DNA from: Octopus sinensis | Lineage: Eukaryota | Direction of reading: 5' to 3' | Length of the DNA stretch: 64,000 bases | Assembly: GCF_006345805.1 (NCBI RefSeq) | Contig: NC_043014.1 | Coordinates: forward strand, 37,014,001-37,078,000 | Part shown: positions 18,246-40,844 of the stretch, piece after piece | Layout of the letters: each line of letters begins with the position of its first letter | Numbering within the stretch: the stretch's first letter is position 1 | The notes under the pieces: generated by a model | Seen by the model: the letters and a program-made list of their open reading frames with translations, nothing else | Database searches by the model: none | Told to the model about the DNA's origin: nothing | Program-made: the position numbers and the translations under genes

Positions 18246-18897
18246 ATGGCCGAGTAAGTGATTATATTTTGTTAAACATTTTATAGTATCTTCATTTTAT
18301 GTACATATATTTATATATATATATATATTTTATTATTATATGGCGGTTGTTAATATAGAATAGTGTTTTATTCTTAATGTTGGGATAGGAAAGCATAATC
18401 TTATAACCCAATTTAGACAAACATACCTGTGATTAGAACAATGTTTATTACACCTGTGTAGAATAGTTTTGTTATTTTTCGAAACGTAGTTAGCTTAGGC
18501 TTCAGTTTGAGACCAACACCAAAGATTATGTATATATTTAAATATATTGGTAAAAACGGTAAGATAACAAAAGAAAGAAAGAGACCTCAATATTATGTAA
18601 ATAGAGGAAATTTATCTATAAAATAATATGTACAACTATCTTGACTATTGAATAATTGTACATTTTATTTTATAGATATATTTAAATATATATATATATT
18701 ATATTATATATCAAGCAAAGGTAAAGAAAACGCACACCACCCGTTATATAAATATATAATATAATATTCAACAATTCTTTCTCACTTGAACCGCTGTGGC
18801 GGAAAATTTTTTCTTGAATTTTTTGCTACCCTTATATTGATATATATATATAATATATATTGTATTATATCTATAATATATAAATTATATATTATAT

Positions 18898-20920: not shown

Positions 20921-22273
20921 TATGTGTGTGTATCATGTATCAGATAATACAAAAAATATGCCGAAAAATATTTCTATCACTTCCCCTAAAATCTGCCTTT
21001 AGTTTACCAGGCATACCAGGAGAATAAGATATAAATATGATATTTTAATTATATCATTTAATTCATTTACTGAAATGGATCGAACGTATTTTGATGATTC
21101 AGTGTGACAAAATACCACCCCACCTAAACATAAAGGCGTTTGTCGATAATTCTGTGTTGTTTTTAGATTAAATTACGATACTAAAATTTGTTGTGACATT
21201 CTTCGAGTTTCCTCTGTTTACCACCAGAGGGCTTCTAACATGGCTGTCTAGCATAATTGTTTGGGTTTCCCTGAACATCAAGTCGTTGAGAAACCACCGA
21301 TGGCTTTTGGCTGTCATATTCAAATCAGCGTGGTGGAGTTTGTCCTTCTTCAAGATTAATTTGTAGAAAGAATTTGTATCAGACGTGCGAACTGACAAAC
21401 ACGAGTCAATGGATGAGTTGCTATTTCAGAGCTTATATTTCTCGCCGAGGTTGACTTTGCCTTTCATCCTCTCGGGGTCGATAAATTACGTACCAGTTAC
21501 GCACTGGGGTCGATGGAATCGACTTAATCGCTTTGTCTGTCCTTGTTTGTCCCCTCTGTGTTTAGCCCCTTGTGGGTAGTAAGGAAATATATTTCTCTGA
21601 ATTTACAACCGGATAGTGTTTTTATTAGTATCAGGACGTTGACTGCTATTGACTGAATTAGAAAATATAAACAGGAACCAAGATAAAATTGAGACTCGAA
21701 CGTCATTAAATTTTCTAAGGAAACAAACAATACTGCTTCAGATCTATTTAAATGATACATTTAACAATATTGTTTGCTTGGAAGTTGCGCTGAGAATGCT
21801 ATTTTTCGAGAGTTTCCATGCGGGTTTCTTGCTTCGTCGCCTGTACAAGAATCTGGCGGGGTTACTGTTGTATCGGATCAAAACTATAACGGTTGTTATT
21901 AATTTAAATATAAATATTTGAAGTACCGGTGCTTGTTTCTTTAGAGAATTTGATGACGTTCGTTTTGGTATTGTACTGTTATTCTAGTTTGTATTTACTT
22001 ACCGAACATGGCATACATGTGGTGTACGCACGTGCAGGCCACACACATACGTATATGTGTACGTACGTGTGTATGTTTGTACATACCTGCGAACGTACAT
22101 AGAAGCCCGTAGTATACACGCACGCACACGTTCTTTTGTTTCAGTCATTTGTAAACACACTAACATCGGTTTTCAAGCGATGATGGGAGTCAAACAGACA
22201 CACACAAGCAGTTTTTTTGTTGTTTTACTTCTTTCAGACATGCCACTGATGCCATACACACACACATATGTAA

Positions 22274-30300: not shown

Positions 30301-33300
30301 GTCTTGTCTGGATTGATCTTTTTTCTCTTTCTGTGTTCATTGATTTATTACTAAATACACTTGAATCGATTCAAACTATCTTAAAGTAAATGATTATGGG
30401 CCTTGAATTTATCATTATAATCATCACTATTATTAATATAAGTTGTACCAGTTAAAATTCAAGTTATCAATCTGGTTATATTAACCCTTTCGTTACCAAC
30501 CTGGCTGAAACTGGCTCTGGCTCTGAGTACAAATGTCTGGTTTCCATAAGTTTTGAATTAAAATCTTCCACCGAACCTTAGTCACATTTTATGTTCCTAA
30601 CACTAGCTTCATGATAACTAAGTTATTTTACTAAATTCTTTGTTATATTTAACCCTTTAGTATTCAGATTACTCTGTTAAATGTAATATTTTTTTACTCA
30701 AATTGTTTTGAATTAATCAAGCATTATCTTATAGCTTTGGGGTTTCAATGATGTGATTGTTTATTTTTAGAATGTCAATGTAGGTTAGGTGTGAGAGGTT
30801 AGATATCGCCAGTTTTAATATAAAACATATAGAATATTTGGGCCGGATATGGCTGGTTTAAACACTAAAGGTTTGAAGTAATTGAAAGAAACAGAGCATT
30901 TCAAAATAAATACAGTAACAAAAGGGTTAAGCAGTTAAGTCACTTTTTGATCATTTCCTGGTTGCTGACTTTGGCCATGCTGGGGCACCGCCAAGAACTG
31001 TAGTTGAACGAATTGAACCCAGTACTTATTTAAAAGTTTTTTTTAAAGTCTAGTACTTACTAGCTTGTAGCACATTTTGACAGTTATGTCTTTCTCCTGT
31101 TCCCTTTAGACATTTGTCTCTAGGTTTTTATGCTATATCATTATAACCTTTTTGTATTTAGCTGGCAACATTTTCCAAGCTTTTTATTGCAATGAAGCTC
31201 ACTGAAGCATATAATGAATGTACACTTGGGCCAAAGATTTTTCAACTTGAGTGACATCAGTTTGTGTCTAGTGATGCTGAAAAATTGTCAGATTCTCAAC
31301 AGTTAATCCATAAGTTTAGAAGATTAATGCAATAAAATCATTCTCATACTGTGCCAAGAAAGATTAACTCAACATACTTTTATATTAGTATAAAGACATC
31401 AGTATCATGAGGCAGCATAATTGAAAAGTAAAGGTTGAAAACATAGGAGGTTACTCTTGAGTATAGAAGGATGCATCATATGCTGTATTACTGTTATCCT
31501 GTTATAATTATCAAACGAAATTAGAGTGAATTCTTGCAGAACTACACCACAGATTTTTGTGTACAGTAGTAAAGATCTTTTCAACTTATGGTAATGTCTT
31601 TAGAACCTCATTAAGACATTAATTTTTGAAACCACATATATTTTGAAGTTATTTAATCCATCTATGAAGGTGGTGTTAAGGCCTCTATATTCTCTCTCTC
31701 TCCAAAGAAGACCAAGTGCCTGGCATGTTAGATTTTTCACTCATCCTCAACATTTCAATGTGCTTTACTTTTCTTTTGTGAACTTTTGTGGATTAACTTT
31801 CACCAACACAGACTACCGCAAGTTGCCTTGGATTCTGGATCCTACCCTTTTATTACAATATAACCTGCAACCTCTTTTCACTATGCCTAACTTAAAAACT
31901 TATACATACAGAGTATACACTATGAACACAGAAGGTATCTACTTTCCCTTTTTCCAGCCTGCTGTCACTCAACCTACATCTTTTCGCTGGCATCTTCACT
32001 GAAAGATGATTTGGTTGTCACATACACTTCATCAGCTTGTGCCTCCATCATCATCGTGTCATTCTACCCCATTTTGGACTCAGTTTTACCCTTCTAGCTC
32101 CTTACCAGAGACCTTGCCTTCTCCTTAATGTACTGGATATGTCCTTATTAGTTTTTTTACAGCGACTCATCTGTGACTCACAACATCCACTCTTGCTCCT
32201 TTCCTCTTGTTCTAATCAGATGCTTAACTTAGGGTAGTGCAAATTATTTTGGTCTTTGAAAGGGATGATGCTGGCTCAACATCCCTCCTCCGGGGCTCAC
32301 CACACTTTGTCAGTTCTCTTACTGGTGTGACATTGTCAAGAAGGCAGAGCAGCAGTGGTTTTTTCACATTGATCTCTACAGAGACAATGTCCTCTGTCAA
32401 CTTAGTGACTACCAGTTTTATCAAAAACTTCCAAGAAATAGTATCCTTGCAAACACAATGCTAATCTCTACTATGGCTCACCAGTTCAACTCCTTTGCAT
32501 TACATCCTGCTACCCCACACTCCCACTATGTACTTCTTCCCAAAAGTTGACAAGTCCAACACTCCCGACCAGCCATGCAGTTGGTTAGCAGGCTACTTAC
32601 CACACAGCCACTCTGGGCCTATATACACATATTTCTAAAAGAACAAATGCCTGAAATGCTGGTTGCTTTTTTTTTCTTGTACAAACTTTTATGACATAAC
32701 TTTTGCTGATGCAGTTTCCTCAAATTCCAGATCTTTCCTTAATGCATTTAATCAGTTAGTTGGTACTTATGGCTTTAAGAAACAAAATTATATTATGTAA
32801 CAGCATGGCCCAGGCCCATATACACTCTAAGGTGAATTCTTTTTTTCATGATTAACTTTGGCTTTGTTTAAGTTTTATCTGCCTAAGATTGGAATAAATA
32901 ACTGCCGATAATTTACTGGTCTTTATTCAGTAGATTGTTACCATACCTTTAATAATTATTGGTCTACTCTAAAAGGACTTATCAGCAGTGGATGGTGGAA
33001 TCAGTAAAAAGCTAAACAAAATTCTGTGTGGCATTTAGCTATTGCGCCTTGTGTTCTGAGTTCAAATCCTGCCGAAGTCCTCTTTACTTTTCATTTTTAC
33101 CTTGACTGATAGATACCTGTTATACATTGAAATTGCATTGAAAAAAATACCAGTTATCCATTGAAGCTGATTTAATAAACCATGCCCCACTTCTGCCAAA
33201 AAAATATGCGGTGAAAATAATGATTATTAGGCACAGGCATGGTCGTGTGGTAAGAGACCTACTACCCAACCATATGGTTCTGGGTTTCAGTCTCACTGCA

Positions 33301-36300
33301 TAGCACCTTGGGCAAGTGTCTTCCACTAAAGCCTCAGGCTGACCAAAGCTTTGCGAGTTGATTTGGTAAATTGAAACTTTTCGTTTTGTAGAAATCCTGA
33401 AAGGAAAACCAAAGATGCTCAGCTTCGAGCTGCAATGAACCAGCAACTGAAAGACAGTGGTGAAAGAGAAAAGTGAGTAATTATAGCAAATCCTTTTACT
33501 AGTGTCATTCATTTAATGGTGGCCATGCTGGAGCATTAATGTAAATGTTTTAATTATTAACCAGTTTAATAGTAGAATTGGCTTAATAATGAACTAGAGC
33601 AGTCAATATTGGAAACACTGTGAGAAGGAGTGTGGAATAGGAGTGAGTTTCTAGTAAGTTGCATACGCTGTCGAAATTGGACTCTTAGTTGAAGCAACAT
33701 GACAAAGGACTGAGATACCTGGCACCTTGCTGTATGTGGAAGCACATGGCCTAGTGGTTAGAGCAGCGGACTCGCGGTCGAGGGATTGCGGATTCGAATC
33801 TCAGACCGGGTGATGTGTGTGTTTATGAGCGAAACACCTAAGCTCCACGAGGCTCCAGCAGTAGGTAATGGCGAACTTCTGCTGACTCTTTCACCACAAC
33901 TTTCTCTCACCCGTTCCTCCTGCATCTTGCAGTTCACCTGCGATGGACCAGCGTCCCGTCCAGGTGGGGAACCTATACGCCAAGGAAACCAGGAAACCGG
34001 CCCTTATGAGCCAGGCATGGCTCAAGAAGGAGCAAACAACACCTTGCTGTGCTCATGAAGACCCATAATCCACAGCAGATGTGTCAAGGCTGCTCCCCCT
34101 GGTGAAGAAGACTGGCCTGCAAGATTCCTGCACCAGTGCCATGTAAAAAGCACACATGTCAGTACCATGTAATAGTGCTCATACAGTACCACGATAACTG
34201 CACTCAGCAGATTGTGTAAAGTGGTTGGCATTAGGAAGGGTATCCAGCCATAGAAACCAATCCAAACCAGACTGGAACTTGATGCAGCTCTTGGGCTTGC
34301 CAGCTCGGGTTAAACCAATAAGAACTGGGGTCAATCTGTTCAACTAAAACCTTTCAAGGCAGAGCCTCAGTATGGCTGCAGTCCAATGAATGAAACAAGT
34401 AAAAGATAAAAAGAAATGAGTTTTAGATGATTTGATCATTCAAGTTTGCAACACTCAGCTGTCAGTAGTTCTATATAATTCATAATTATTTCATATTCTT
34501 GCAGTACCCACTGGTATTCAGATTATTCTGTTAAATGTAATGCTTATTTATTCAATTGTTTTGAATTAATCAAGCATTATCTCATAGATTTGAGACTTTT
34601 GTGATGTGATTGCTTATTTTTAGAATGTTATTGTTGGGTAAATGTGATAGACCAGCTCTAGCTGGTTTGAACATAAAACAGGTAGAATATTTGGGCCAGA
34701 AATGGCCTGTTTAAATGCTAAAGGGTTAAAATGTGGAGAAGCACTTCCTTGAAGTCAATTACGTTAATCCTCCATTGAAGAACGCCTCTGACTAGATGTC
34801 AGGCAACTTTATTAATTACATAATAATTATCATTCATCTTCATTATTATTTAACAACCTTTTTTTCATACTGCTATGTGTTGGATGGTTTGAAATGAATA
34901 GACAGGCCACTCTGCAGGGTGGTTGGTTTTAGGAAGAACATCCATCTGTAAAAACTGTACCAAAACAGATACAGAAGTTTGGTGCAGTCTTCTACCTGGC
35001 CAGCTCCTGTCAAACCATCCAACCCATTGAACAATGATGATGAGACAAGCCAGAGGGCTGTGCCAAACTCCAGTGTCTGCTTTGGCATGGTTTCTACAGC
35101 TGGATGCCATTCCTAATACCAACCACTTCACAAAGTGAGTGTGTAGAGGGTGTTTTTTTTTTCTTTTTTATGGCACTAGCACTAGTGAGATCACCAAGTA
35201 CTTGCAAGACAAAACTCCCTCAACTAAGTGGGGTACAGTATTGAGGAATAAGAAAGCTAGATGGAGGGACAGGGGCCGATGTCTTGCAGAAGTGGTGCAT
35301 ACATGTCTTGCCCATCTGAAAAGAGAGAGAGAGAGAGATGCAAGGTCAAGGTACAAGGTGAATATCATCATCATCATCATCATAATTTAACATCCGTTTC
35401 TTATGCTGGCATGGGTTGGGCTGTTTGGCCAGAGCTGGCAAGTTGGAGAGCTGAACTAGGTTCCACTCTGATTTAGCATGGTTTCTATGGTTGGATACCC
35501 TTCCTAATGCCAACCACTTTACAGGATGAGCTGGGTGTCTTTTATGTATCACTAGTACAGATTTCTTTTGTGTTACCAGAACAAGTGCCTTTTACATATC
35601 ACCAGCACTAACCATGACAGGCTGCTACACAATTTCCATCTAACAAGTTCACTCACAAGGCAGTGGTTGACCCAAGTCTATAGTAGAAGACACATGTCCA
35701 AGGTGCCACATGCTTGCAAAATAAGCTTAACCACACAACAATCTAAATATGTCACTAAAATGGATGAAAATGTTTTACTTTTAAATTACACAACTTTAAA
35801 TTGAATTGCTTTAATTCATTATGATTTTCGTAATCTTAAAATACTTTTTTGTGTTTTGTGGGGTTTTCTTTGTTTTGTTTATTTATTGTCTAATTTGTCT
35901 TGAAGAAATCCTGAAAGGAAAGCCAAAGATGCTCAGCTTCGAGCTGTAATAAACCAGCAACTGATGGAGAGTGGTGAAAGAGAAAGGTAATTATGGCAAA
36001 CTCTTTTACTGGTTTCATTCATTTAATGGTGGCCATGCTGGAGCATTAATGTAAATGTTTTAATTATTAACCAGTTTAATAGTAGAATTGGCTTAATAAT
36101 GAACTAGAGCAGTCAATATTGGAAACACTGTGAGAAGGAGTGTGGAATAGGAGTGAGTTTCTAGTAAGTTGCATACACTATCGAAATTGGACTCTTAGTT
36201 GAAGCAACATGACAAAGGACTGAGATACCTGGCACCTTGCTGCACTCAAGAAGAACTATGCTTCCCCTGGCGAAGGGGATTGACCTGAAAGACTCCTGCA

Positions 36301-39300
36301 CCGGTGTCATGTAAAAAACACTGATGCTAGTGCTATGTAATAGTGCTCATGTAGTGCCACATTAACTGCACTCAGCACACTCTGTAAAGTGGTTGGCATT
36401 AGGAAGGGTATCCAGCCATAGAAACCAAGCCAAACCAGACTGGAACCTGGTGCAGCTCTTGGGCTTGCCAGCTCGGGTTAAACCAATAAGAACTGGGGTC
36501 AATCTGTTCAACTAAAACCCTTCAAGGCAGAGCCTCAGTATGGCTGCAGTCCAATGAATGAAACAAGTAAAAGATAAAAAGAAACGAGTTTTAAATGATT
36601 TGACCATTCAAACTATTTTTATAAATTCATTCAAGTTTGCAACCCTCAGCTGTCAGTAGTTCTATATAATTCATAATTATTTCATATTCTTGCAGTACCC
36701 ACTGGTATTCAGATTATTCTGTTAAACGTAATGCTTATTTATTCAATTGTTTTTTTTTTATGGCACCAGCACTAGCGAGTTTAGAAGATGAGTTGTTGGG
36801 GGAAGGTTTGACAGAACCTCACTGATGAGCTGGATTGGTCTTCCCGAGAACAGCATATCATCAGTCATCTTGGACCCCTTTCATCTCCTCCAAGTGGCTC
36901 ATCATCATTGTCAAAACAGATATTATAATTGTTTCAATAAGTGTGATTAATAGTCAGTCACTTGACTTTTCCTAATCAAATACATTCATTGAAGGTAATT
37001 TAATTTTGGTATCTCTTCTTTCTTAATAATTTCAGGTTAAAGGAGTTATTAAGAACTCGATTAATTGAATGTGGATGGAGGGACCAACTGAAAGCACATT
37101 GCAAAGGCTAGTATTACAGTGTAAATAATTACTTTTCATTCTTTCATGTTCATCTCCATTTCAGTGTTATAGATTGGTCGAGTCTTTAAGGCCTCAAATA
37201 AATGCCTTGTGGTATTTTATTTTAACTCTTTGTATTCTGAATTCAGATCCCTCCAAGATCAACATCGTCTCTTGTCTAAACAGGTTCAATAGTATAAAGT
37301 ACCAGAGGGCAGATGGGGAAACGTTCCTCCCTTTCTTACACAGAATCAGCTGCACTGCAATGCGAGGAATGAAGGGCCGTTCATAGCAGCCCTTTCCTCC
37401 AAGACAACCACTTCCACTTTATCTCAGAGTAAGAGTGTGGTCTCTCTGAGACTTTAGTAGAGTATGGCATATAATGGTGATGTGCTGCTATAATTTATTG
37501 CATGTGACACGTAAAAAGCACCCACTACACTCACGGAGTGGTTGGCGTTAGGAAGGGCATCCAGCTGTAGAAACACTGCCAGATCAGACTGGGCCTGGCG
37601 CAGCCTACTGGCTCCCCAGACCCCAGTTGAACTATCCAACCCATGCTAGCATGGAAAACGGACGTTAAACGATGATGATGATGATCTGTGTGCTCAGAAC
37701 TGCACAGAGACACATATTTGCACATGCGTTTAAAGTTGATAATTCACTCTGTTGCTGCTCTTGAGCGTCATTCAAATACTGCAGGTGACTAATTCAACTA
37801 AACTCCTTACTCAAAATGTTTGGCCTTGTTATTATGCAAGGAGGTAAGTTGGCTGGATTGTAGGAGCTTAGGATATTCAGTTATGGATCTTCTAAATTCA
37901 AACCCCACCTAGGTCAACTTAGCCTATCATTCCTTTTTTGTGGATTGATGAAATATAATAACAATCAATACAGGAGTTGATGTAATTGACTAAACCCCTC
38001 CTACCAAAATTGATGGTCTTATGCCTAAATTAGAAACAATTAAAGGTGGCAAGCTGGCAGAATGATTAGCATGCCAGACAAAAGGCTTAATGGTATTTTT
38101 TCTATATCTTAACATTCTGAATTCAAATGCCACCAAGGTCAACTTTGCCTTTCGTTCTTTCGGAGTCTATAAAATAAGTTCCAGTTGGGCACTGGAGTCA
38201 ATATAATCGACTTACCCTCTCCCACCAAAATTGATGGCCATGTGCCTAAATTAAAAACAATTACTGTCACTCAGTTGTTAGAGAATCGGGCTCACAATCA
38301 TGAAGTAGTGAGTTCAATTTGCGAACCAGGCTGTATAGTTGAGCAAGACACTTTATTTCACATTGCTCCAGTTCAATCTGTTGTAGAAATGAGTTGCGAT
38401 GTCAATGGTGCCAAGCTGTATCAGCCTGTGCCTTTCCCTTGGGTAACATCAGTGGCGTGGTGAGAGGAGGCTGGTATGCATGGGCGACTGCTGGTCTTCC
38501 ATAGACCATCTTGCTCAGATTTGTGCCTCGGAGGGAAACTTTCTAGGTGCAATCCCGTGGTCATTCATGACCAAAGGAAGTTTAACCCTTTACTATCATT
38601 ATTATTATAATTATCATTAGTTAGCAGAAATGCTAGAGTGCTAGGCAAAGGATGTTTTAATATTTGATTGTGATCCTCTGTGTTATACTTCAACTATAAC
38701 TTTCAATCATATCAGTACAATAAAATAAAATATCAGCTATACATTAATGTTGATTCAATTGATAAAACTCTTCTGTCATACATTTGAGACTACATTACAA
38801 TGTCAGAAATCAATGTTATATTGCAATTTATATCCTTATTTGTTTGTGTTCTTGTTTTTCAGACATAGTGAAGAAAAAAGGACTTGAATGTGTAACGGTT
38901 GATGATTTGGTCACACAGATAACACCAACTGGTCGAGGTATGTTTGTGTCTCTTCTGCTGCATCATAGTCATTCAGGAATGGCTGTGTGGTAAGTAGCTT
39001 GCCTACCAACCACATGGTTCCGGGTTCAGTCCCACTGCGTGGCACCTTGGGCAAGTGTCTTCTACTATAGCCTCAGGCCGACCAAAGCCTTGTGAGTGGA
39101 TTTGGTAGACGGAAACTGAAAGAAGCCCGTTGTATATATGTATGTATATATATATGTATGCGTGTGTGTCTGTGTCTGTCCCCCTAGCATTGCTTGACAA
39201 CCGATGCTGGTGTGTTTATGTCCCCGTCACTTAGCGGTTCGGCAAAAAGAGACCGATAGAATAAGTACTGGGCTTACAAAGAATAAGTCTTGGGGTCGAG

Positions 39301-40844
39301 TTGCTTGACTAAAGGCGGTGCTCCAGCATGGCCACAGTCAAATGACTGAAACAAGTAAAAGAGTAAAAAAAAAGAGAGTAAGTGTTCCAGGGGACATATA
39401 GAAAAGGGAGGATAAGCTGACATTTGGAGAATCTAGTGGAATTTGTAAAAAAGAACTGGATGTGTAATCTTAGTGTGTGTAAACAACAGAACACAAGCTG
39501 AGAGAAAAATTGACTAGAAGAGAAACCATCTGATATGGGCATACAATGTGTGTGGAAGATACCACTTGTATAAAGAGGTGCTGGAAGAAGGAAATTTAGG
39601 AAGGCATGAGACAAAGTTAGGGTAACTGATTTTAAGATGCTGAACCTCACAAAGGAGACAAAGAATCATGACAAGTGAGGACACACAATGCTATAGAAAA
39701 TTGCCCAACAATATAAGTATGGCAAAACAGTCATAAAATAATGGTAGGTTGAGATACATTGTATATTCTACTATGTATCTCTTGCTCATTATATTCCTGT
39801 TGAGTCTCCGTCTACTACACCCTTTGTTACTCTCTCATCTAGCACTCATTGTCTGTCCTATTAATGTAAAACTCTATCTGTGTAACATCCATTTTTCCAT
39901 ATTTGCATGGGTTGGATGAAGTTTGAGGCAAATTTTCTACAGCCGGATGCCCTTCCTGTTACCAATCCTCACCTGTTTCCAAGCAAGGTAATATTTCTCC
40001 ACCGCCAAACGTGTTCATGTGAAATATTGGAGATGAATGAAAGTGCTTGTATGACAATGACAGTCATTTACAACTGTCACACAATGCCAAGAAAAGGAGA
40101 CAAACACACACAACTGGCTTCTTTCAATTTCCTGTCTATCAGATCCACTCACAAGGATTTGGTCTGCCTGGTGCTATAATAGAAGACACTTGCCCAACGT
40201 GCCACGCAGTGGGACTGAACCTGGAACCATGTGGTTGGTTAGCAGACTTCTTCACCACACAGCCATGTCTTGCACCTCATTTGATCTGTCCATATTCAAT
40301 CTTTCTACCATAAGTCATTATCAATCCCATGTCTCGATGCCTGTTTAGTGAGGAATATGACAACAAATCTGTCCATACACTGACCAGTACCATAACCCTT
40401 CTCTGCTGCAGGTCATCATACTCTCTCTCTCCGAGTGACTCTTTATTACCATGTACCATCATCCATCTCTGATAGTTATTAGCTCTCGCCGTCTCTGTCT
40501 CTTGCAATCCCATCACCCACTACATACACTATAAAGTGGCAGCATGTGTTAGGAAGGGCATCCAGCTATGGAAAACATCAAAATAATGGAACCTGTGTGC
40601 AAGACATAACCTTCTGAGTCATTTAAGATGTCAGTAACTCTAAATAAGAGCTGACTTGGATCATGATGGTCTGTCTGTCCAAGCCATCTCTGTATAGAAA
40701 ATTGAACATAAAATGATGACAGTATACTGATAAATATTTTTTCCTTTTTTTTTTACTTCAGCTCTTGTTCCTGATGATGTTAAACGAGAACTCCTTCAAC
40801 GAATTCGAACATTCCTTTCACAACAAACCCCTAATATGTGGTAA
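18246..40844 (+). CDS. ENY2: Transcription and mRNA export factor ENY2/Sus1 (SAGA DUB module and TREX-2 subunit), 105 aa
   Basis: Exons: 18246-18253 (ATGGCCGA|GTAAGT), 35906-35986 (or 33392-33472), 37036-37106 (GC donor), 38863-38937, 40762-40844 (TAA). 318 nt in frame. Protein: [105 protein letters not shown]. Highly similar to vertebrate ENY2. Confidence 0.96.
18680..20930. repeat. Degenerate (TA)n tracts, ~2.2 kb, including a ~60-bp CTAAATCAAAT minisatellite at ~19925-20190
   Basis: Direct inspection. Starts ~430 bp after ENY2 exon 1. Confidence 0.95.
21221..21232 (+). promoter_or_regulatory. CTCF-like motif CCACCAGAGGGC
   Basis: Matches the CTCF core consensus and sits in unique CpG-rich sequence of ENY2 intron 1. 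Confidence 0.45.
22270..22770. repeat. (TA)n/(CA)n compound microsatellite
   Basis: Direct inspection. Confidence 0.9.
23073..23091 (+). promoter_or_regulatory. CTCF-like motif TGGCCACTAGGTGACAGCA
   Basis: One mismatch from a canonical TGGCCACTAGGTGGCAGCA site. Same orientation as the motif at 21221. Confidence 0.4.
25520..27310. repeat. Degenerate T-skewed (TA)n tract, ~1.8 kb
   Basis: Direct inspection. Confidence 0.95.
28419..29048. mobile_element. 630-bp fold-back non-autonomous DNA transposon (Merlin/Mutator-like), 8-bp TSD
   Basis: Termini GGATCTTTTCC...GGAAAAGATCC, and the element is palindromic along nearly its whole length. TSD CCAAAGTC at 28411-28418 and 29049-29056, inserted in a family B SINE tail. 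A solo TIR arm sits at ~28211-28293. Confidence 0.85.
30481..30930. mobile_element. piggyBac-like MITE with a second MITE nested at an internal TTAA
   Basis: Outer element TTAACCCTTTCGTTAC...GTAACAAAAGGGTTAA. Inner element starts at TTAA 30649-30652. Confidence 0.75.
33392..33472 (+). CDS. ENY2: Duplicated ENY2 exon 2 (exon 2a), intact 81-nt alternative exon candidate
   Basis: Acceptor TTTTGTAG and donor AA|GTGAGT. Same length and phases (2/2) as exon 35906-35986. Encodes (E)[26 protein letters not shown](K) with no stop or frameshift. Confidence 0.6.
33734..34039 (+). mobile_element. tRNA-derived SINE (family D) with 11-bp TSD
   Basis: A-box TGGCCTAGTGG, B-box GATTCGAATC and AAC-type tail. 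TSD CACCTTGCTGT at 33723-33733 and 34040-34050. Confidence 0.88.

Follow-up and report, generated by a model that had tools for sequence, protein, structure and literature searches.

The ENY2 gene of Octopus sinensis carries two copies of its second coding exon. The question that this locus raises is how the two copies are used. The gene lies on the plus strand of a stretch of 64,000 nucleotides (nt) from NCBI RefSeq assembly GCF_006345805.1 (contig NC_043014.1, positions 37,014,001 to 37,078,000). This whole stretch is called the window, and all coordinates for O. sinensis are window positions. ENY2/Sus1 is among the most conserved small adaptors in gene expression and is common to the SAGA deubiquitinase module and the TREX-2 mRNA-export complex. 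A first-pass annotation of the window proposed that the two copies, 2a and 2b, are mutually exclusive. The evidence gathered here points instead to 2a as a conserved optional exon upstream of 2b, giving a six-helix ENY2 beside the canonical form. We regard this reading as moderately probable.

Two copies of exon 2 in the ENY2 gene

A tblastn search with human ENY2 retrieved five coding pieces on the plus strand. The query matches the alignment to PDB 4DHX over residues 6-98. With both copies of exon 2, the gene reads as follows.

18246-18253, plus strand: coding part of ENY2 exon 1 (ATGGCCGA, followed by the donor gtaagt); the splice sites of the model were taken from the sequence.
33392-33472, plus strand: exon 2a, the derived upstream copy of 81 nt, found within the annotated proteins of 132 amino acids (aa).
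35906-35986, plus strand: exon 2b, the ancestral-type copy of 81 nt, encoding canonical helix alpha1.
37036-37106, plus strand: ENY2 exon 3, 71 nt; its donor, at 37107-37108, is GC.
38863-38937, plus strand: ENY2 exon 4, 75 nt.
40762-40844, plus strand: ENY2 exon 5, coding part, with the stop TAA at 40842-40844.

The spliced products of this model match RefSeq proteins exactly in a sequence look-up. The junctions used in the first-pass annotation (18253, 33392/33472, 35906/35986, and 37036) fit the complete gene. A second exon 3 was not found in the window with the human ENY2 query.

Direct comparison bore out the description of two same-phase 81-nt copies with seven differences, all non-synonymous. 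Exons 2a and 2b are identical at 74 of 81 bases and differ at positions 17, 42, 46, 60, 61, 64, and 81. In the ENY2 frame the residue differences (2a/2b) are T/A, A/V, M/I, K/M (two nucleotides), D/E, and K/R, and none of the changes is silent. This pattern is not significant for 7 changes in this exon (chance P = 0.11-0.20). It was rejected as proof of selection for that reason. Identity to human ENY2 over the exon is 76% for 2b and 67% for 2a, so 2b is the copy nearer to vertebrate ENY2, as had been noted.

The splice contexts are those quoted in the first-pass annotation. Exon 2a has the acceptor ttttgtag and the donor gtgagt. Exon 2b has the acceptor tcttgaag and the donor gtaatt. The 2a donor is the stronger of the two. 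It includes a 4-nt insertion.

33473-33478, plus strand: 2a donor GTGAGT, from a 4-nt GTGA insertion relative to 2b and Argonauta, kept in three Octopus species.

The insertion is real, as had been claimed. It is seen in the alignment and in the spacing of the copies (2514 versus 2510). It is the derived state, because Argonauta and every 2b copy have GTAA.

Two further changes touch these exons. The weak 'gaag' acceptor of 2b results from a T-to-A change at 35903 (position -3) that occurs in O. sinensis only; in O. vulgaris and O. bimaculoides the acceptor reads 'gtag'. Through its I-to-M change, 2a gains an in-frame ATG at 33435-33437, and the gene model of O. bimaculoides takes this ATG as its start codon. 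A protein made from an internal promoter or start here would begin inside the extra helix.

Isoforms on record and mutual exclusion

Isoforms were sought by exact-sequence look-up in a protein collection of 15 billion sequences. This is evidence from gene models and not from RNA reads. The possible products were as follows.

2a+2b protein, 132 aa: on record as XP_029647786.1 (O. sinensis isoform X1) and CAI9737746.1 (O. vulgaris).
2b-only protein, 105 aa: on record as XP_029647787.1 (isoform X2).
2a-only protein, 105 aa: absent from the collection (exact look-up).
Protein without either exon 2 copy, 78 aa: absent from the collection (exact look-up).

Isoforms X1 and X2 differ by exactly the 27 residues of 2a. 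The 2a+2b protein is the one O. vulgaris protein found. The O. bimaculoides protein XP_014784021.1 starts at a Met inside 2a and runs on through 2b. In the gene models, 2a behaves as a cassette exon, joined to 2b and not used in its place. Exon 2a can be optional because it is 81 nt long and phase-symmetric. The earlier remark that including both exons stays in frame was correct. The 132-aa frame is open, and the annotations show it in use. We infer that the annotated junctions reflect real, abundant transcripts.

Tandem mutually exclusive exons are known from SNAP25 (5a/5b), tropomyosin, 14-3-3 zeta, and the Dscam clusters. The Octopus exons resemble these systems. They are adjacent copies of equal length and phase, they differ at few residues in an interaction helix, and they have conserved flanking intron. 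They differ from these systems in that the Octopus models hold both copies or the downstream one only, and in that no enforcing mechanism was found.

Mutual exclusion would place either 2a or 2b in each transcript. It would give two 105-aa ENY2 proteins with different alpha1 helices, which might favor SAGA or TREX-2. We consider this unlikely. The copies are equal in length and phase and have usable splice sites. The stronger 2a donor and the weakened 2b acceptor of O. sinensis make skipping of 2b after inclusion of 2a conceivable. An intron arm at 35423-35554 can also pair with 34201-34315 or with 36352-36483, and the second pairing would loop out 2b. However, the collection contains the 2a+2b and 2b-only proteins and no 2a-only protein, and the O. 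bimaculoides gene model joins 2a to 2b. The proposal of mutual exclusivity is not supported by these records.

No mechanism that would enforce exclusion was evident from the frame, intron length, splice-site type, or conserved competing RNA structure. The exon length is a multiple of 3, so double inclusion is in frame and nonsense-mediated decay would not enforce a choice. The intron between 2a and 2b is 2433 nt, so steric block is not expected. Both exons have U2-type GT-AG sites with no U2/U12 mix. The inverted-repeat layout is not conserved in O. bimaculoides. Near-invariant alpha1 residues are altered in 2a, which would make it a poor straight replacement for 2b.

The inverted arms (34201-34315, 35423-35554, and 36352-36483) are repeat-derived and 81-82% complementary over 115-132 nt. 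The arm 5' of 2b can pair with the arm 3' of 2a or the arm 3' of 2b. Such pairing could influence 2b skipping or back-splicing. The arms were considered as a docking/selector system and not favored, because the layout downstream of 2b differs in O. bimaculoides.

Origin and age of the duplication

The similarity of the exons is part of a duplicated block of ~0.9 kb with 88-94% identity. Positions 33379-33732 match 35894-36242 at 94%, and positions 34091-34562 match 36259-36753 at 88%. The block and its surroundings comprise the following.

33379-34562, plus strand: duplicated block, copy A.
35874-36753, plus strand: copy B of the duplicated block, homologous to copy A of O. bimaculoides from ~30 nt upstream of the exon onward.
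34563-35873, plus strand: spacer between the copies, ~1.3 kb, 58% interspersed repeats, orthologous in O. bimaculoides.
33283-33378, plus strand: interspersed-repeat fragment directly 5' of 2a, of family D8, matching 39022-39117 at 86%, with ~10 copies in the window.

Copy A contains a lineage-specific 358-nt repeat insertion at 33733-34090. In O. sinensis, homology between the copies begins just 12-13 nt upstream of 2a, because the repeat fragment at 33283-33378 abuts the 2a acceptor. In O. sinensis and O. vulgaris this fragment replaces all sequence beyond -13 of that acceptor. The fragment is absent at 2a in O. bimaculoides, where the acceptor region of 2a is homologous to that of 2b. The homology of the copies there extends ~30 nt upstream and includes the polypyrimidine tract. 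A longer simple tandem unit and recombination between flanking repeats were rejected as the origin of the duplication. The spacer is not collinear with the sequence past copy B, and exon 3 occurs only once.

O. sinensis, O. vulgaris, and O. bimaculoides all have the two exons, and the differences that tell the copies apart are shared among them. Over the 4.2 kb compared, the window is 100% identical to O. sinensis assembly GCA_006345805.1. The O. vulgaris locus is 97.6% identical over 4.2 kb around the duplication, and both of its exons are unchanged. In O. bimaculoides, 2a differs by 1 nt (V instead of A) and 2b differs by 2 nt, both synonymous. The 2a frame is open in all three species, and its AG, GT, and GTGA insertion are retained. 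This is the outcome of the comparison with other octopods that the first-pass annotation had proposed as a check. In Argonauta hians the locus spans 26.8 kb and contains one exon 2. The split between O. bimaculoides and O. vulgaris is dated to ~34 million years (My) ago (PMC10700109). The duplication occurred after the Argonauta split and before the O. bimaculoides/O. vulgaris split. It is >34 My old, because both copies are found on either side of the latter split.

Exon 2b is the ancestral copy and 2a the derived one. This polarity rests on the agreement of 2b residues with outgroups: its I, M, E, and R are also present in Argonauta and in a more distant cephalopod protein (P0005) of the same cluster. 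Of the 2a changes, I45 to M and E51 to D hit columns that are at least 90% invariant among 54 aligned ENY2 proteins, and M50 to K alters a position that is conserved as hydrophobic. Against the Pfam family, a hypothetical protein with 2a alone scores 110.7 bits, which is 4.9 lower than the 2b-only protein (115.6).

The first-pass annotation named haplotype misassembly as a possible flaw, in which two haplotypes of one exon have been placed side by side. In O. sinensis, stretches of flanking intron agree at 97-100% between the copies, as such an artifact might produce. This near-identity is explained by gene conversion that is traceable site by site. Six fixed differences and the GTGA indel are common to three independently assembled species. 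The copies are separated by the orthologous ~1.3-kb spacer. The divergence of the exons (8.6%) is far above allelic levels. The three-species comparison ruled out this candidate, and we consider an artifact extremely improbable. The claim that an ENY2 exon for helix alpha1 is duplicated is supported as a genuine tandem duplication.

Conservation of exon 2a and gene conversion in the intron

Compared with O. bimaculoides, exon 2a has a single mismatch over its 81 nt, and the five accepted exons have 0-2. Gap-free noncoding windows of 81 nt have a mean of 5.6 mismatches; of 1841 such windows, 6.0% have no more than 1. The empirical P for the conservation of 2a is ~0.06, and the binomial P is 0.002-0.04 for a background of 6-10%. 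The 2a acceptor is still usable after the repeat replaced the region upstream in O. sinensis and O. vulgaris. Judged from these comparisons, 2a is probably maintained.

Conservation around both exons continues for ~150 nt into the intron downstream of each (2-4% divergence versus ~11% beyond).

33473-33625, plus strand: conserved intron block 3' of 2a, with 4 differences in ~150 nt against O. bimaculoides and ~11% further on.
35987-36135, plus strand: conserved intron block 3' of 2b, identical to the 2a copy over +29 to +149 in O. sinensis.

Conserved intron beside exons is typical of regulated alternative exons. The downstream block is not conserved in Argonauta and is partly repeat-derived. 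Folding of the intron at 33473-33732 and 35987-36242 is no more stable than that of shuffled sequences (z -0.2 to -1.4), which gives no hint of a structured RNA within it.

The two copies have not diverged evenly along their length. In a six-way alignment, fixed differences between the paralogues occur only at positions 17-109. They comprise six in the exon, the indel, and four in the intron at +1 to +28. This is 11 in 109 positions versus 0 in the next 236 (P = 2e-6). Sites that separate one species from the other in both copies are found only at position 231 and beyond. Distance matrices group the exon and proximal intron by paralogue and the distal intron by species. These patterns show the distal intron evolving in concert within species, by gene conversion between the copies. 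A recent 2a-to-2b conversion in O. sinensis is also indicated, because 2b at +29 to +149 equals 2a in this species while O. vulgaris 2b keeps older states. Because the exon groups by paralogue and the distal intron by species, the identities of the exons have persisted beside an actively converted intron. This escape from conversion was considered as proof of 2a function and was downgraded. The pattern is real, and selection on 2b alone could suffice.

Predicted structure of the 132-aa form

The 132-aa form was modeled with AlphaFold2 from a 54-sequence alignment. The model had a mean predicted local distance difference test score (pLDDT) of 84 and a predicted template modeling score (pTM) of 0.60. 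It contained six helices at residues 5-27 (encoded by 2a), 32-52, 54-68, 71-86, 93-107, and 110-127. The first helix is followed by a break at EKNP. Exon 2b encodes alpha1 and the start of alpha2.

Residues ~35-127 superpose on human ENY2 in its complex with GANP, 4DHX (Foldseek; target template modeling score 0.91-0.93, root-mean-square deviation 1.1-1.3). The last five helices also superpose on Sus1 in SAGA and TREX-2 structures. A phmmer comparison to human ENY2 (4DHX) gave E = 3.8e-45 with 77% identity. Positions 2-83 of 83 in Pfam family PF10163 (EnY2) were matched by the 132-aa form with 117.1 bits and by the 2b-only form with 115.6 bits (cut-off 27). On the predicted model, the octopus protein is a member of the ENY2/Sus1 family with the canonical five-helix hairpin.

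ENY2 consists of five helices joined by hinges that wrap a partner helix (PMC3378895). Octopus residues ~35-127 resemble this hairpin in the solved structures of ENY2/Sus1 (PDB 4DHX, 3FWB/3FWC, and 3M99/3MHS; PMC3378895). The sixth, N-terminal helix and hinge of the octopus 132-aa form are without counterpart there. We infer from the model that the extra helix may alter how ENY2 engages its partner helices (ATXN7L3/Sgf11 in the SAGA deubiquitinase module and GANP/Sac3 in TREX-2).

Taken as a history, an optional exon 2a would have arisen as follows. A block of ~0.9 kb was duplicated in tandem in an ancestor of O. bimaculoides and O. vulgaris/O. sinensis, after the Argonauta split. Along with ENY2 exon 2 it took in ~30 nt on the acceptor side and ~770 nt of the intron that follows. 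Exon 2b kept the ancestral sequence and serves as the canonical helix alpha1 exon. Exon 2a gained five or six amino acid changes and the stronger donor GTGAGT. It has since stayed open, spliceable, and nearly unchanged. When included, 2a would be spliced to 2b, and the resulting 132-aa ENY2 would have one more helix and hinge (residues ~5-31), a diverged likeness of alpha1, before the five-helix hairpin. When 2a is skipped, the product would be the canonical 105-aa ENY2.

Maintenance or neutrality of exon 2a

Exon 2a may also be a young and effectively neutral exon. It would be spliced at some level or only modeled, and it would have stayed intact through its shortness, limited age, and regional conservation. 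We consider this possible but clearly the less probable account of 2a. A frame of 27 codons easily stays open by chance over such divergence. The sampling covers one genus. The all-non-synonymous pattern (P 0.11-0.20) is not significant, and the empirical P for conservation is just ~0.06, at a level equal to that of the neighboring intron. The early changes in 2a occurred at about the rate of the adjacent intron and on invariant residues.

Several of the same observations count against an optional, maintained 2a. From the duplication to the O. bimaculoides split, 2a changed at approximately the adjacent-intron rate, at otherwise invariant residues, and relaxed constraint would give the same pattern of early change. 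Exon 2a is no more conserved than the neighboring ~150 nt of intron. The evidence from its conservation is suggestive and not conclusive. The survival of exon differences beside converted intron can be explained by selection on 2b alone. The helix encoded by 2a has a pLDDT of 57-76, which is modest model confidence. The 2a+2b and 2b-only isoforms rest on gene models. No transcript-derived (Logan) Octopus protein was found in the collection, and a search with the N-terminal 64 residues alone for partial transcript-derived proteins gave no matches. The O. vulgaris annotation drew on Iso-Seq, RNA-seq, PASA, and EVM, and it also took the O. bimaculoides proteome as evidence (PMC10700109). Because that proteome fed the O. 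vulgaris pipeline, the three annotations are not fully independent.

Other observations are harder to reconcile with neutrality. Exon 2a is as conserved as the constitutive exons over ~34 My (age from PMC10700109). Its single change (V to A) gives a residue that Argonauta and human ENY2 also have at this position. The donor became stronger and has been retained since, and the acceptor is usable despite the replacement of the upstream region by a repeat. Exon 2a is present in RefSeq isoform X1 and in the one O. vulgaris protein found. A parallel doubled exon is retained in two scorpion species.

Parallels in other organisms

The first-pass annotation knew of no such ENY2 architecture elsewhere. 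This statement did not hold. The 2a+2b protein was already present in RefSeq/ENA models, and exon 2 has been doubled independently in the scorpion Centruroides. The ENY2-like protein of Centruroides vittatus (P0007, 125 aa) contains two exon-2-like segments, both in the annotated protein. Their exons are 81 and 66 nt long, lie ~1.4 kb apart, and have the same phases as in Octopus. A further Centruroides assembly, GCA_000671375.2 (probably C. sculpturatus), encodes the identical protein. The exon pairs are as follows.

L006, 9820-9900 and 11198-11263: Centruroides tandem exon 2 pair.
L005, 10757-10837 and 12231-12296: Centruroides tandem exon 2 pair.

The two genera are alike in having tandem copies of exon 2 that are both annotated in the protein. 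The upstream copy in Centruroides is the more diverged in its C-terminal half. Unlike in Octopus, the downstream copy has a 15-nt deletion, and the copies are far more diverged (~40% identity). The doubled alpha1 exon of Centruroides is independent and convergent, because other chelicerates and molluscs have one copy.

In GCA_000671375.2, ENY2 exons 3 and 4 occur twice at locus L005 (16998-17751 and 19859-20612) with identical translations. They occur once in C. vittatus. The doubling of exons 3-4 may be an assembly artifact or a very recent segmental duplication.

A survey for doubled-exon ENY2 took in the 120 best clusters formed at 90% identity and 150 representatives at the 50% level, where cases within a cluster would be hidden. 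Only Octopus and Centruroides were found in this set. The other long proteins had N-terminal extensions. ENY2 homologues P0137, P0146, P0147, P0167, P0257, and P0161, which are probably from plants, contain 'MRASINRPPTPD...' and then a second 'IINxKLxESGE'. From its sequence this looks like an insertion in, or a partial repeat of, helix alpha1, and another sign of plasticity at this end of ENY2.

Letunic and colleagues are said to have described, in 2002, tandem exon duplication that gives an in-frame internal repeat or a cassette exon. The Octopus case is similar in that a symmetric 81-nt exon was copied, both copies are spliceable, and the protein gains one structural unit. It is unlike the general case in its host, which is a conserved single-domain adaptor of ~100 aa in which one exon is a quarter of the fold. 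The unit added is also distinctive, being a diverged copy of a partner-wrapping helix. ENY2 has diversified by lineage in whole-gene paralogues as well (Drosophila e(y)2 and e(y)2b, PDB 9JUA; teleost ENY2-1 and ENY2-2). Octopus differs from these in duplicating just the alpha1 exon inside one gene.

The literature search returned no paper connecting ENY2 with octopus. Judged by title and abstract, none of the four papers that name both ENY2 and mutually exclusive exons deals with cephalopods or with ENY2 exon duplication. The doubled-exon ENY2 is undescribed, yet it is already present in public gene models.

Possible consequences for ENY2 function

A natural isoform with an additional, diverged copy of the partner-wrapping helix would offer a ready-made means to probe how cells apportion ENY2 between SAGA and TREX-2. 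Octopus and, convergently, Centruroides might have turned the five-helix ENY2 into a regulated six-helix form that shifts it tissue-specifically between the SAGA deubiquitinase module and TREX-2. We regard this extension as doubtful. If it were true, the extra helix and hinge would either lengthen the stretch of partner helix that is wrapped or act as an intramolecular competitor of alpha1. A minor isoform with 2a alone could provide a third state.

The locus is a clean, small example of a symmetric exon that was duplicated and kept, and of exon identity that persists beside gene-converted intron. Its practical weight is modest. The architecture is known from gene models that are already public, and the more striking claim of mutual exclusivity is unsupported.

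Other features of the locus

A scan of the whole window against Rfam matched no family. The exon 3 donor is GC in O. sinensis and O. vulgaris (AAAG/gctagt). It is gttagt in O. bimaculoides and gtaagg in Argonauta. The GC donor is a recent GT-to-GC change at a donor that was already weak. The annotated ENY2 proteins need the junction at this donor.

A TRIQK-family gene is annotated on the minus strand. Its coding sequence starts with ATGCCATGTTCG, followed by the donor gtaagt, at ~22012-22014, within ENY2 intron 1. It overlaps ENY2 head to head over ~3.8 kb. The Argonauta counterparts lie side by side with no overlap.

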